Shown here piece by piece: positions 4,401-8,629 of a DNA stretch of 64,000 nt. Every line of letters starts with the position of its first letter. Position 1 is the first letter of the stretch. Source of the stretch: Lepidodermella squamata (lineage: Eukaryota > Animalia > Gastrotricha); contig JBLDXI010000058.1 in assembly GCA_047495785.1 (NCBI GenBank), forward strand, positions 62,001 to 126,000, given 5' to 3'. The notes under the pieces were generated by a model, which made no database searches, was not told the DNA's origin, and worked only from the letters and a program-made list of their open reading frames with translations. Position numbers and translations under genes: made by a program.

Positions 4401-4976
4401 TTCTCCTTCTTCACTGGCTTCCCTCGTCTTACCACATCTGAAGCGGGTGTAGCTGAATTTTGTGTCGACGTGCTTCTTGGGGTCCATTGAGACGTAGCTA
4501 CGTCTCATGTTGAGACCCGGTGCGCCTGTGCCCACTGAGTCGCTTTGAAGCGTTGAAGTCGCCCCTGACTATTAATAGGTCATGTTTAGGGACCTGCGAG
4601 ACTGCTCTGGCTCATAAAACGCCTCCTTTGCCTCCTCCTGCAACCCCGAATCGTTTCCGCATGGGTACATGAACTGTCTAGACTCCGCCTTCCTTTCGGG
4701 TTTGGGCGCGCCCGTACATTCTGCCTGCGCTCTCTGCTCTGTACATTTCGCTGGTTTGGTTTTAAGTAGCTATTTTTTGTTTCTAACACGGTTCCCATTT
4801 TTTGTACAGTAGAGTCGGTGAAACCACGCGTTAACCACCGACCTAGTGGGAGGGCACTGCTGCTGGTCCGTTGCCTGCACGTTTAGCTGGACACAAGTCG
4901 CAGCCAACGGAGTATTCGTACAGCGCACAAACTTCAATACGCCAACTTTAAGGCCGCAGTAGCTTCGTGAGCACCT

Positions 4977-5005
4977 CGTTCGTGGCGCGGAAGAACCCGC
5001 ACTTC
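4977..5005 (+). repeat. Left terminal inverted repeat CGTTCGTGGCGCGGAAGAACCCGCACTTC
   Basis: Exact reverse complement of 8513-8541. Confidence 0.97.
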
Positions 5006-5021
5006 GATGATTTTTTGCCTT

Positions 5022-5209
5022 GAGCTGTACTACGCGGAGTACAGCCTTAGACACTGTACTGAGTGGTACAGCATTTATGGGCTGTACTCTCGAATACAGC
5101 ACACGGACTGTGTACACTGTGTACAGCCAAGGGAAGGGCTGTACTGCCCAGTACAGCCATCTAGACCGTACTGCCCAGTACAGCCATGTGGACCGTACTG
5201 CCCAGTACT
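5022..5209. repeat. Left subterminal array of CTGTAC-N5-8-GTACAG palindromes
   Basis: About 7 degenerate units, e.g. GGCTGTACTGCCCAGTACAGCC. Confidence 0.9.
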
Positions 5210-5273
5210 TTAAGACATCATTCCATAGATCACCCCGTTCTCCATGCATCATTCATTTCGACTTCAATGTTAC

Positions 5274-6590
5274 TTATTCATTAGGGATTATTTCCATTTT
5301 CAGCATTTCGAGGAGATCTGCCATAAGAGCATAAGGCAGCGGAATCGGGGAACTTCTCAGTCTCACAGGGGGCCCAGATGGTACTTTCTTCAGCGCGTTG
5401 ACTGAGAGCGAGTATGTTTTCTCCGGCCACTTTGCTTCGTAGCCATCGCGTACGGAAATAGTCCGCAGTCCCTTCTCGTACCTGAACCAGACGCCTTCGG
5501 ACCAAGGCAGATAATCGCTTTTAGTGCTAGGTTTCGCTCCAAGACCAAAAAAATTCGAGTTCAAATTATTGCTTGCCCTCCAATTTTTTGCCTTTCGAAG
5601 TTTTGAGGTGAAGCTGGGTTCGCCATGAAAGTCCAGCTGTTGATCCCACGTCAGCTCGTGAACTACAAATGGCTTATCAGGACGGCAAATTCGGGCAACT
5701 TCCCGCCAGTCCGTTGAGAAATTGATGGAATAGCGGCTGCTTCTACGCTCGATTAACCTGGAAAATACGATAAACGACATCATCATGTGAACATGAATGG
5801 CACTTTACGCACGAGTGAGTGTGATCAACGACCATCATGGTATGATTCGCTTGGAAGAATTTGTGATGCACATGCTGCAGCTGAGATGTGGCGTTCTGTA
5901 ACGCGAACATGATCGAACATGATCGAACATGATGAACATGTTTGAAAAATAGCTGCTGTGGTTTCCCGTGCCGTTGTCGCTGTAGATGATGAGGGTGCGG
6001 CAATCTGGATGATAGACCGGTAGATACTTTGTGATGTAAAGATAAATCGCTGAGCCGGCAGAGCTGCCATCAGGATGTTCCAAGTCTGTCTCGTCAGACA
6101 TGAAACAAAATGTTTCTTTCGAAACCATTTCGTAGATCACTGAAATATATGAAATTAGCTCAAAATCAATAACTTTCAAACTAAAATTACCGCAATTCCA
6201 GGTTTTGAGTTTTCTGAAGTGATAGTTCGCATCAGAAATAGCCGGACTCAGCAAGGCTTTTTCATAATCCAACTGCACCACAACGACATCAGGTTTATCC
6301 CGGGCCAATTTCGTATCAGCTTTGCAAGCTCGTCGAGCAGCGTTTTTCAAGTACAAATGAGCTTGAAAAATCGTTTTACGACTGTTGTCAACTTTTTTTT
6401 GGCGAAGGCGCAGCTGAAATTTTCGGCATTTACAGCATTTATCTTTTTTAGTTAATTTGAGCGAGAGTTCAGGGTAAGCTTCGCGTAAAATCCTTTTGAA
6501 TGAAGTGAAGCCCAAAGGCAACAGTCCGGAAGGTACCTCTGAGAAGTGCTTCAAGTATAGCCATCAAACATTTCTTTTTGAGGAATTAGA
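5274..6590 (-). pseudogene. Sola DDD transposase, C-terminal half, with two introns and a frameshift
   Basis: Motifs KKDKCCKC, QLDYEKALLSP..YHFRKLKTWN, LIIYSDN and HKFFQANHTMMVVDHTHS-LIER. GT-AG introns at 6190-6140 (51 nt) and 5812-5758 (55 nt) restore the motifs. Two extra copies of GATCATGTTC near 5905-5930 cause a frameshift, and there is an in-frame TGA near 6563. Confidence 0.85.
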
Positions 6591-6677
6591 ATTTCCAAAG
6601 AAAATCAAAATATTTCAAATTCTCGTCAAGTCCTCAACTTTGCGAGCCAAGCCACCATCACGCCTATCCGCCATCAT

Positions 6678-6950
6678 CTATCGCCGAGCTTCGCCTGACA
6701 TGACGATTACCTCAAGAATTCCTGTATTTAGCTCCAAAGCTAAATTTAGATCATCTTCATCTTCAATGACGACGTGATGCTCATCGTCGCACCAGAATAG
6801 CCCGTAATCATCGGCATTAAATAAATCTCGAAAAACTCCGTAGCATTTCGTTTTGACGTGAATCAACGGATTCTCACAGTCATCTTTAATTTTTACATAG
6901 CGAGCCCACTGAGCCCCCAAAACTGAAAATGTAACGATATTTCCAGGCAT
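6678..6950 (-). CDS. 90-aa PB1-domain-like (ubiquitin beta-grasp) ORF inside the Sola element
   Basis: YGLFWCDDEHHVVIEDEDDLNLALELNTGILEVIV resembles the acidic OPCA motif of PB1 domains (L.Y.D.EGD.V.I.SDEDL..A). The length matches one PB1 domain. The ATG is preceded by TTTTTTTAG. Confidence 0.6.
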   Translation of the reverse strand: MPGNIVTFSVLGAQWARYVKIKDDCENPLIHVKTKCYGVFRDLFNADDYGLFWCDDEHHVVIEDEDDLNLALELNTGILEVIVMSGEARR

Positions 6951-6967
6951 TTTATCTAAAAAAAGCT

Positions 6968-7333
6968 TTACGAGGACGCTGTCTTCTTATGAGAGAAAAA
7001 ATTGAACCAAGACGAGGAAGATTTGTTCTCGTCATTTTGGCTTTTCTTTTTGTCGGATTTACCCTTGGTTTTCAGCTTTTTCTTTTGATTAGCAGACGAA
7101 GCAGGCGGCGACAACGACGAAGGCTCTTCTCTGGCTTGCACTTCGCTTGGAACATCGGGCGATGGAAGGCTTTTCGCTCGATTCGAGTTGCCGTCACAAC
7201 CCGGTTTTGGTTGTGGGGGAAGAAAATCCTCAACCGTTGCGTACTGAGTAAGGCCCTCCATGCGAATAAAATTGTCTGTAAGTGGGGCAGGAGAGCGACA
7301 TCGCGCTCTCGCAGCATTTTTGTTGCTCTTAGT
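6968..7333 (-). pseudogene. Low-complexity Ser/Pro/Lys-rich accessory reading frame in the Sola element, interrupted at its 5' side by an RTE insertion
   Basis: The frame stays open from about 7333 (TKSNKNAARARCRSPAPL..MEGLTQ..KKTASS*). An acceptor-like TTTTTTAG lies on the other side of the RTE insert (7957-7964). Confidence 0.35.
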
Positions 7334-7951
7334 TAGATATGCGGAGTAACACTTAGGGACAGGATTCGCAATGAGGTCATTGGAAATATGTGTGGTTTAG
7401 AACAATTTACATTCAAAATTGCTAGGCGGCAACTTCGCTGGTACGGGCACGTCGCTCGCATGGACCCCGCCGTAAGGCTGGCAAGCCAGATGCGGTACTG
7501 GCAGCCGCCGGATGATACTTGGAATAGACCTCGAAGGCGACCAAAATTAAGGTGGATTGATTGCATCAAAAAACATTTTAACAAAATAGGGATTAACAAT
7601 TTTGAGGAGGCCGACGCCCTGGCCCAGGATAGAACTACTTGGAGACAAAAAATTCATAGTTATTTTGGTGAAAATGAAATATCAGAGTAAGGATGAGTTT
7701 TTGAGGTTGACGATCAGGATAGGTAGCTTGCTCCTCCTCCGACACTCGGTTCGCTTGGCGTGAACAAAATTTACATCACGCCCGGCGAATTGGGTCCACC
7801 GGAGTGCATTTTATTTTATCATTTTTCCTTCTCATTTTTGTTTCTTCGTTTCTGTAATTGAACTCAATTGTTTTTGTTATGTTATTGTTGATCAATTAAT
7901 GAAGGAAAAGATAAAATAAAGAAAATGCTATGCTATGCTATGCTAAATGCT
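7333..7951 (+). mobile_element. 5'-truncated RTE-clade LINE (C-terminus, 3'UTR and (ATGCT)n tail) inserted in the Sola element
   Basis: RRQLRWYGHVARMD..RPRRRPKLRWID..AQDRTTWR is the typical RTE C-terminus. AATAAA at 7915-7920 and (ATGCT)4+1 tail at 7925-7951. Confidence 0.9.
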
Positions 7952-8253
7952 ATTATCTAAAAAATTTCAAAATGAGTGAACCAAGCCGAACATTGATGAA
8001 AAACATGGACGATCGTATGAAAACGGGCAATGTACCGAGATTGATCTAAGAATGCTTTGACTTTCGTCAAATTTATGAGAAAACCTGAATAAATCGGCTT
8101 CCGGCATATTTCATTTCGGGCAAATCGTGCATCCGATTGCTCATAAATTCTTGTTATTTAAAATCAAAATCCCATTTATTACCATCAAATTGTTTTATTG
8201 TCGTCATCTGACCCACAAACAAGTCGCAATTCCTGTTTACATTAGCCTAATTA

Positions 8254-8499
8254 GGCTGTACCTCTACAGTACGGTGACCGCGGTGCTGTAAACTGCGAGT
8301 ACAGTGATTCGGGCTGTACTTTGAGTACGGTAATGCTGACTGTACTGCTGACTACAGCCTGCCATTCAGCTGTACTTCTGAGTACAGCCTAATGAGCTGT
8401 ACTTCAGGTACAGCCTCGAAAAGACTGTACAATAAAAGTACAGCAGTAGGCTGTACCCGAGAGTACAGCCGGGTGTTGTGCTGTACTCGCTTGTACAGA
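8254..8499. repeat. Right subterminal array of CTGTAC-N5-7-GTACAG palindromes
   Basis: About 9 units at roughly 27-bp period, e.g. GCTGTACTTCTGAGTACAGC and GCTGTACCCGAGAGTACAGC. Confidence 0.9.
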
Positions 8500-8512
8500 C
8501 ACTTTTTTGCCT

Positions 8513-8541
8513 GAAGTGCGGGTTCTTCCGCGCCACGAACG
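8513..8541 (-). repeat. Right terminal inverted repeat
   Basis: Exact reverse complement of 4977-5005, followed by the ACCT duplication. Confidence 0.97.
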
Positions 8542-8629
8542 ACCTGAGATAAATAATTCCATCATTTAATTTGCATCAATAAATTTTTTGTTTTCGTTGG
8601 CGTTCCTCGGGCGCCAGCGAGACCGAAGA

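Follow-up and report, generated by a model that had tools for sequence, protein, structure and literature searches.

A divergent PB1-like domain in a relic DNA transposon of Lepidodermella squamata and the probable accessory gene from which it derives

The open reading frame (ORF) under study lies on the minus strand at positions 6678 to 6950 of a 64,000-nucleotide stretch of contig JBLDXI010000058.1 from the gastrotrich Lepidodermella squamata, hereafter called the window. In the ORF listing of the window, this frame starts with ATG and spans 90 codons, and two transposase-like ORFs of the same orientation (5835-6554 and 5274-5786) follow downstream of it. The frames are enclosed in a 3.57-kb element bounded by perfect 29-nt terminal inverted repeats (TIRs), found to be 100% complementary in the repeat search, and by a 4-bp target site duplication (TSD), ACCT (Table 1). 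Of the 40 matches to the motif GTAC[A/T/G]G, 37 fall within the terminal 700 bp of the element. The minus-strand sequence leading up to the ATG of the 90-aa ORF consists of seven T followed by AG and ATAAA. A sequence-only reading of this DNA had described the frame as a stand-alone PB1-like gene carried by a Sola DNA transposon. Its observations that the frame is co-oriented with and upstream of the transposase remnant, that it lies inside the TIRs and that an acceptor-like site (a poly-T stretch and AG on the minus strand) stands 5 nt before the ATG are all borne out.

Table 1. Features of the transposon copy in the window. Positions are those of the window; the last column gives the evidence on which each feature was placed.
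Feature	Position	Strand	Basis
TSD ACCT, left copy	4973..4976		flank comparison
TIR, 3' end relative to the direction of the genes; begins CGTTCGTGGCGCGG	4977..5005	+	repeat search, flanks
Subterminal GTAC[A/T/G]G-type array, 3' side	5031..5215		repeat and motif search
Transposase remnant, 76-85% identical in aa sequence to the exons of family B	5274..6575	-	tblastx
Junction of ~2-kb internal deletion	6575..6597		alignment to family B
Tail of ORF1 exon 1, decayed	6612..6677	-	in-frame homology to ...MMA...V(E/D)(D/Q)LTRMIS of families A and B
90-aa ORF, PB1-like domain of ORF1 exon 1; premature TAG, Thr7	6678..6950	-	
Native leader, end of poly-T and AG acceptor-like site 5 nt before ATG	6951..6961	-	
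Foreign 374-bp segment with 97-aa ORF 6968-7261(-)	6962..7335		99% identity to C21:2525340-2525713
Inserted multi-copy repeat, ~615 bp; ORF 7388-7690(+)	7332..7952	+	genome comparison
Subterminal GTAC[A/T/G]G-type array, 5' side	8260..8500		repeat and motif search
TIR, 5' end relative to the direction of the genes	8513..8541	-	repeat search, flanks
TSD ACCT, right copy	8542..8545		flank comparison

A six-frame search of the 121-Mb genome revealed 20 places that encode relatives of the 90-aa ORF at 34-57% identity, most of them free of stop codons. Among these are two families of intact elements, A and B, in which the TIR core of the window element recurs. Whether homologues are flanked by TIRs was a check suggested by the sequence-only reading, and those of both families are. 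Furthermore, dense subterminal repeats are common to all three lineages, that is, the window copy and families A and B. In family A, represented by a 5.07-kb element (L023:3243-8308), the domain shares 57% protein identity with the window ORF. At least 2 full copies of this family are present, the one at L041 being 99% identical to that at L023, and L024 is a family A copy with a deletion. We also observed that the full-length copy at L023 (ends 3243/8308) has no clean 4-bp TSD and that the terminal base differs between its two ends.

In family B, the domain shares 49% protein identity with the window ORF and the element measures 5.45 kb (L021:3225-8670). Seven near-identical copies (L021:3225-8670 and the six loci L006-L011) gave equal scores, with all frames open. 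The copies at L021 and L022 are 99% identical and carry the TSDs AAAT and ATAC, respectively. Family B thus appears to be transposing still, or to have done so until very recently. Another multi-copy lineage, itself decayed (C7, C32, C48, C60 and C64), is related to these elements by its transposase (47-67% identity, with stops), and none of the 20 PB1 matches listed lies near it.

The assignment of the 90-aa product to the PB1 domains, first proposed from the sequence alone, was examined by several routes. The Pfam search gave no support: the window ORF has no match to the PB1 model (PF00564), and no family member reaches its gathering cut-off of 23.6 bits, the best paralogue standing at E 0.12. 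Likewise, a six-frame Pfam PB1 scan of the genome found host PB1 genes and missed the transposon PB1 loci, and a word-index protein search with the 90-aa ORF gave no match. A profile built from 8 genomic paralogues of the ORF (alignment A1) found a single, weak match among PDB sequences, the PB1 domain of Arabidopsis NBR1 (E 0.24, covering 70 of the 90 positions). Searched against 1.84 billion representative proteins, the same profile gave six matches at E <= 1e-3. Four are repeat proteins matched in several stretches, which we regard as artefacts; the two non-repetitive matches, P0004 (E 7.7e-5) and P0006 (E 8.5e-4), are small proteins that both score above the Pfam PB1 gathering threshold. 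Apart from these distant PB1 proteins and the repeat-protein artefacts, the profile found no close relatives of the domain among the 1.84 billion proteins, and the searches run here returned no relatives outside the L. squamata genome.

Structure prediction pointed in the same direction. The AlphaFold model of the domain (pLDDT 64, moderate) has the strand-strand-helix-strand-strand-helix-strand order of a ubiquitin-like beta-grasp, the fold for which the sequence-only reading had suggested looking. In a Foldseek search of the PDB with this model, PB1 domains made up 19 of the 20 best matches (E 2e-4 to 6e-3, TM 0.56-0.67), including those of NBR1, MEKK2/3, MEK5, p62/aPKC and p40/p67phox. Language-model features also group the domain with PB1 clusters (score 0.93, 198 of 256 features shared). 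The OPCA-like acidic motif noticed earlier was confirmed by alignment: residues ~52-72 form an acidic stretch (FW.D....V.I.D.DDL..A) that matches the OPCA region of Pfam-positive PB1 proteins, its invariant D55, D64, D66 and L68 falling within the acidic motif both of these proteins and of NBR1. Profile searches, AlphaFold with Foldseek and language-model features thus agree on a PB1-like domain that misses the Pfam threshold. Four separate methods support the view that the 90-aa ORF encodes a divergent PB1 domain, as judged from sequence profiles and a predicted fold.

The second hallmark of PB1 pairing surfaces, a lysine in strand 1, divides the relatives. In a joint alignment (A3), Lys7 of families A and B aligns with a Lys of P0004 and P0006. 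Since they combine an OPCA-type acidic motif with the canonical strand-1 lysine, the PB1 domains of families A and B would belong to type A/B. In the window copy Thr7 replaces this lysine, and L020, a decayed B-like fragment, has Thr at the matching position in a local alignment. The earlier description of the domain as having only an acidic face therefore suits the window copy and L020, and does not extend to families A and B, which keep the lysine. A homodimer prediction with 2 copies of the family A PB1 domain returned a score of 0.00, which counts neither for nor against self-binding.

The intact families show where the domain belongs. The reading frame of families A and B opens with the Met used in the window and extends ~22 codons beyond the position of the window's TAG, ending in ...LTRMIS; at the site of this premature stop the two families have Gln or Glu. 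Next come a G|GT donor and an AG acceptor that enclose a phase 1 intron of 145 nt in family A and 224 nt in family B, after which coding conservation picks up again at ELQT(D/E)P in both families. The same splice sites occur in a third, B-like copy (C4, 88% identical). Exon 2, of ~111 residues in family A and ~122 in family B, adjoins the PB1 exon in the copies of both families and in the B-like C4 copy, and its stop codon is at the same position in A and B. The next ORF encodes a C2H2-like zinc finger; it has an ATG of its own, lying 3-4 codons after an in-frame stop, and begins with Met-Ala in both families. We also noted that the start of this zinc-finger ORF in family A (L023:5014-5062) contains four tandem copies of MAEP, encoded by a 12-nt repeat that is absent in family B.

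On our reading, these features delineate a separate two-exon gene, ORF1, whose putative product of 224 aa (A) or 234 aa (B) would end before the zinc-finger and transposase frames. The protein would consist of an N-terminal PB1 domain of ~87 residues, a short linker and a predicted small helical domain encoded by exon 2. The claim that the PB1 frame is a stand-alone gene consequently did not hold, as the intact elements carry PB1 as the N-terminal half of a two-exon protein of 224-234 aa. The two ORF1 exons were searched separately, and only the split codon at their junction was read across to check the phase. Both the joining of exon 1 to exon 2 and the boundary between ORF1 and ORF2 were deduced by comparing sequences among the elements, with no corresponding RNA joint listed. 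The 90-aa ORF of the window is probably the truncated first exon of ORF1, which would serve a Sola-like cut-and-paste DNA transposon as an accessory gene.

The exon 2 product was modelled with confidence as a small helical domain (pLDDT 74.5). Its best resemblances were all weak: HTH_5 in Pfam (E 0.05-0.07) and, in the VIA search, a best Z of 4.7, with the GT-1 trihelix at Z 3.7. No significant match was found in PDB sequences, Pfam, Foldseek PDB, VIA or the ESM atlas (features and shape; TM <0.45), so that DNA binding by exon 2 is a guess.

Upstream of ORF1, a poly-T stretch and AG resembling an acceptor site precede the ATG by 5-16 nt in all three lineages (12-16 nt in A and B), at positions 6951-6961 in the window, L023:4010-4033 in family A and L021:4050-4075 in family B. 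These shared acceptor-like sites suggest a conserved intron in the 5' untranslated region of ORF1.

RNA evidence consists of the contigs of one run (X1), only guessed to be RNA, which were mapped on family B. These contigs include a 51-nt GT..AG skip between two transposase exons as well as a loose end fitting a second short intron in the transposase region, and they also cover the PB1 exon. This suggests that family B is transcribed and spliced, the ORF1 transcript not being defined thereby. Many X1 contigs along L021:3225-8670 join opposite strands ~100-150 nt apart, a pattern that could stem from assembly errors or from transcription of both strands.

The boundary between ORF1 and the following frame is central to the gene model, since the PB1 exon could conversely be the N-terminal exon of the transposase, all co-oriented blocks forming one spliced gene whose stops are spliced out. 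Such a gene would be in keeping with the shared orientation and close spacing of the coding blocks, with the short introns seen in the transposase and with a donor-like site, AGG|GTAAGG, located 3 codons before the family B ORF1 stop and matched by an acceptor-like site before the next ATG. However, splicing at these sites would run into a stop after no more than 3 codons in family B and C4, and after no more than 10 in family A. Furthermore, the position of the exon 2 stop is conserved between families A and B, family A lacks any AG in the interval from the in-frame stop to the start codon of the following ORF, and both next ORFs start with Met-Ala. Given stops this close (within 3 to 10 codons), we see no in-frame fusion of ORF1 with the next ORF and consider a single transposase gene unlikely. 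Other splice forms of ORF1 are possible given the strong donor-like site just before the family B stop.

Donor-like sites before the ORF1 stop and acceptor-like sites before the next ATG were observed at L021:4985-5121 in family B and at L023:4845-5020 in family A. If both sites were used, the ORF1 stop would precede the next start by 9 nt in family B and overlap with it in family A (ATGGCTGA). This hints at a bicistronic, possibly coupled, arrangement of ORF1 and the next ORF.

Compared with the intact families, the window copy is damaged in several places. It is the sole member of its lineage, and its only other DNA-level match in the genome is to the transposase region of family B (71%). 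In the tail of its exon 1, 3 nt have been deleted, TCA has become TGA and the donor has mutated from GT to AT. Through a deletion of ~2 kb it lost most of the first ORF1 intron together with exon 2 of that gene, the zinc-finger ORF and a Cys-rich exon. The transposase is frameshifted near 5916-5940 by a small tandem duplication, and family B has no frame change there according to tblastx.

Furthermore, a 990-bp composite foreign insert (6962-7952) lies 12 nt upstream of the ATG of the window ORF. Its 615-bp inserted repeat has at least 35 other copies in the genome at 78-97% identity and contains a 100-aa ORF that resembles the C-terminal end of a LINE reverse-transcriptase ORF. The sequence of this repeat resembles the 3' part of a LINE-like element and ends in an (ATGCT)n-like tail. 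The adjoining 374-bp segment occurs at one other locus only, with 99% identity (C21:2525340-2525713; L039:4341-4714), and its 97-aa ORF is Ser/Lys-rich; the segment may have arrived together with the truncated LINE-like fragment directly 3' of it. The 97-aa ORF was considered as an upstream exon and rejected because it sits in a segment shared at 99% with an unrelated locus and is absent from the sister elements. The window copy is a unique, non-autonomous, decayed relic, and its 90-aa product is probably without function.

A different view would make the lysine-less, PB1-only ORF of the window functional in its own right, either as an inhibitor that caps ORF1 polymers, much like the KP repressors made by P elements with internal deletions, or as a decoy for host PB1 proteins, the latter being a role that the sequence-only reading had envisaged. 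The 90 codons are still open, the substitution of Thr for the strand-1 Lys leaves mainly the acidic face, the TIRs and TSD are intact, and the window branch carries no excess of non-synonymous change (a three-way dN comparison puts its length at ~0.19, against ~0.14 in family A and ~0.23 in family B). These features have to be set against the fact that the copy is single, with no sister by which to gauge selection, that the foreign insert stands 12 nt before its ATG, and that there is no autonomous partner of its own family, the identity to the PB1 domains of A and B being 49-57%.

Retention of the exon does not require a function either. Two other deletion derivatives, L014 (B-like) and L019 (A-like), also keep part of the PB1 exon, and in all three cases its position accounts for this, no other coding block being closer to the 5' end. 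The perfect TIRs and the unremarkable PB1 branch length indicate that the window copy has undergone little decay, and at such a low level of decay 90 codons that are still open are expected and are no sign of function. The presence of two stops in the 22-codon tail versus none in the 90 codons was also considered as a signal of selection and dismissed, as so few events are not significant. A functional window ORF is thus very unlikely in our view.

Selection on ORF1 itself was assessed in the PB1 domain of the intact families and their relatives. Between families, the domain has a dN of 0.32-0.41 with saturated dS, and is 48-57% identical, compared with ~55-85% for the transposase exons. Omega was 0.08 for the B-like L012 versus family B and 0.26 for the two family A copies. 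The PB1 domain is under purifying selection (omega about 0.08-0.26), in agreement with the dN/dS below 1 among homologues that the sequence-only reading had put forward for verification. Of the two origins it had offered, captured cargo or a dedicated accessory gene, the latter is favored over a transposase exon by a separate frame and by purifying selection in at least three diverged lineages; this applies to the family as a whole.

The same data bear on captured cargo, the idea that the domain is a fragment of a host PB1 gene, transduplicated and carried along without serving the transposon. Plant Mutator-like elements (MULEs) are thought to have gained PB1 in this way (PMC4948706), and the host genome has PB1 genes of its own. 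However, among lineages diverged to the point of synonymous saturation omega stays far below 1, the start codon, the intron position and the partner exon are conserved, and the domain has no close similarity to any host PB1 locus. We judge passive carriage to be very unlikely. That the ORF is a chance frame, or that its PB1 resemblance is spurious and stems from an acidic low-complexity stretch, is hardly credible: four of the six protein-library profile matches are repeat proteins and Pfam PB1 is not significant, but the matches span the whole domain beyond the acidic run, four different methods agree and the paralogues are conserved.

Taking ORF1 as an accessory gene of the transposon, we propose that its intact product would self-associate front-to-back, or pair, via the PB1 domain, and could take part in building or controlling the transposition complex at the many subterminal GTAC[A/T/G]G repeats. 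A bolder version, in which polymers of the PB1 accessory protein build or regulate this complex and lysine-less, PB1-only deleted copies act as chain-capping inhibitors in a KP-like manner, is a long shot.

PB1 is a host scaffolding module found in autophagy receptors, in polarity and MAP-kinase complexes and in plant auxin factors. The ORF1 domain is like the PB1 domains (PF00564) of NBR1, p62/SQSTM1, MEKK2/3, MEK5 and aPKC/Par6 in its ~85 residues, its beta-grasp order, its OPCA-like acidic motif after strand 3 and, in families A and B, also its strand-1 Lys. Unlike them, it falls below the Pfam threshold, is encoded by a mobile element and is joined to a small helical domain, and its front-to-back binding is putative.

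Sola elements generate TSDs of 4 bp. To our knowledge, no accessory PB1 gene is known for Sola, and none was found in the literature searched. The present elements are similar to Sola in having TIRs and 4-bp TSDs, the latter at three insertions (ACCT in the window, AAAT at L021 and ATAC at L022). They also resemble Sola in a length of 5.4 kb, which is the mean for curated Sola1 elements in bivalves (PMC10294476), and in the lack of a Pfam model for the transposase (PMC5751038). Pfam scans of all transposase exons of the present elements gave no transposase match of any kind. Their TSD, TIRs and length fit the Sola label of the sequence-only reading, so that they are putative Sola-like elements; the literature searched gave no diagnostic Sola motifs.

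A non-catalytic second gene inside the TIRs is also a feature of PIF/Harbinger elements, with their Myb-like protein, and of En/Spm, with TnpA. These accessory proteins bind short subterminal repeats and thereby recruit the transposase or pair the transposon ends. The elements described here are alike in having a second gene inside the TIRs and many short subterminal repeats, and ORF1 would by analogy be comparable in logic to the Harbinger and En/Spm proteins. They differ in that no Myb/SANT or other DNA-binding domain was found in ORF1, and that a PB1 oligomerisation module is, as far as we know, not part of the Harbinger Myb-like or En/Spm TnpA proteins.

The closest precedent for a PB1 domain on a transposon comes from plants. 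PB1-MULEs and the MUSTANG-B genes derived from them carry PB1 on plant Mutator-like elements, where its occurrence is sporadic and its role unknown (Joly-Lopez et al. 2016, PMC4948706). Like the elements described here, they are cut-and-paste DNA transposons carrying a PB1 domain. However, PB1-MULEs are plant elements in which PB1 is tied to the MULE transposase gene, whereas the ORF1 elements are found in an animal, have a 4-bp TSD and encode PB1 in a separate upstream frame. In addition, Pfam scans of all the transposase exons found no match to MULE, SWIM or FAR1, and a full-text literature search found no PB1-carrying transposons other than the plant Mutator-like elements. The window's own copy, a relic, is of little interest in itself. 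Its relatives constitute a second, unrelated lineage of PB1-carrying transposons, this one in an animal and with PB1 in its own frame and under purifying selection. This suggests that mobile elements recruited PB1 domains more than once, and the apparently still-active family offers a workable system in which to ask what an oligomerisation module does for a cut-and-paste element.
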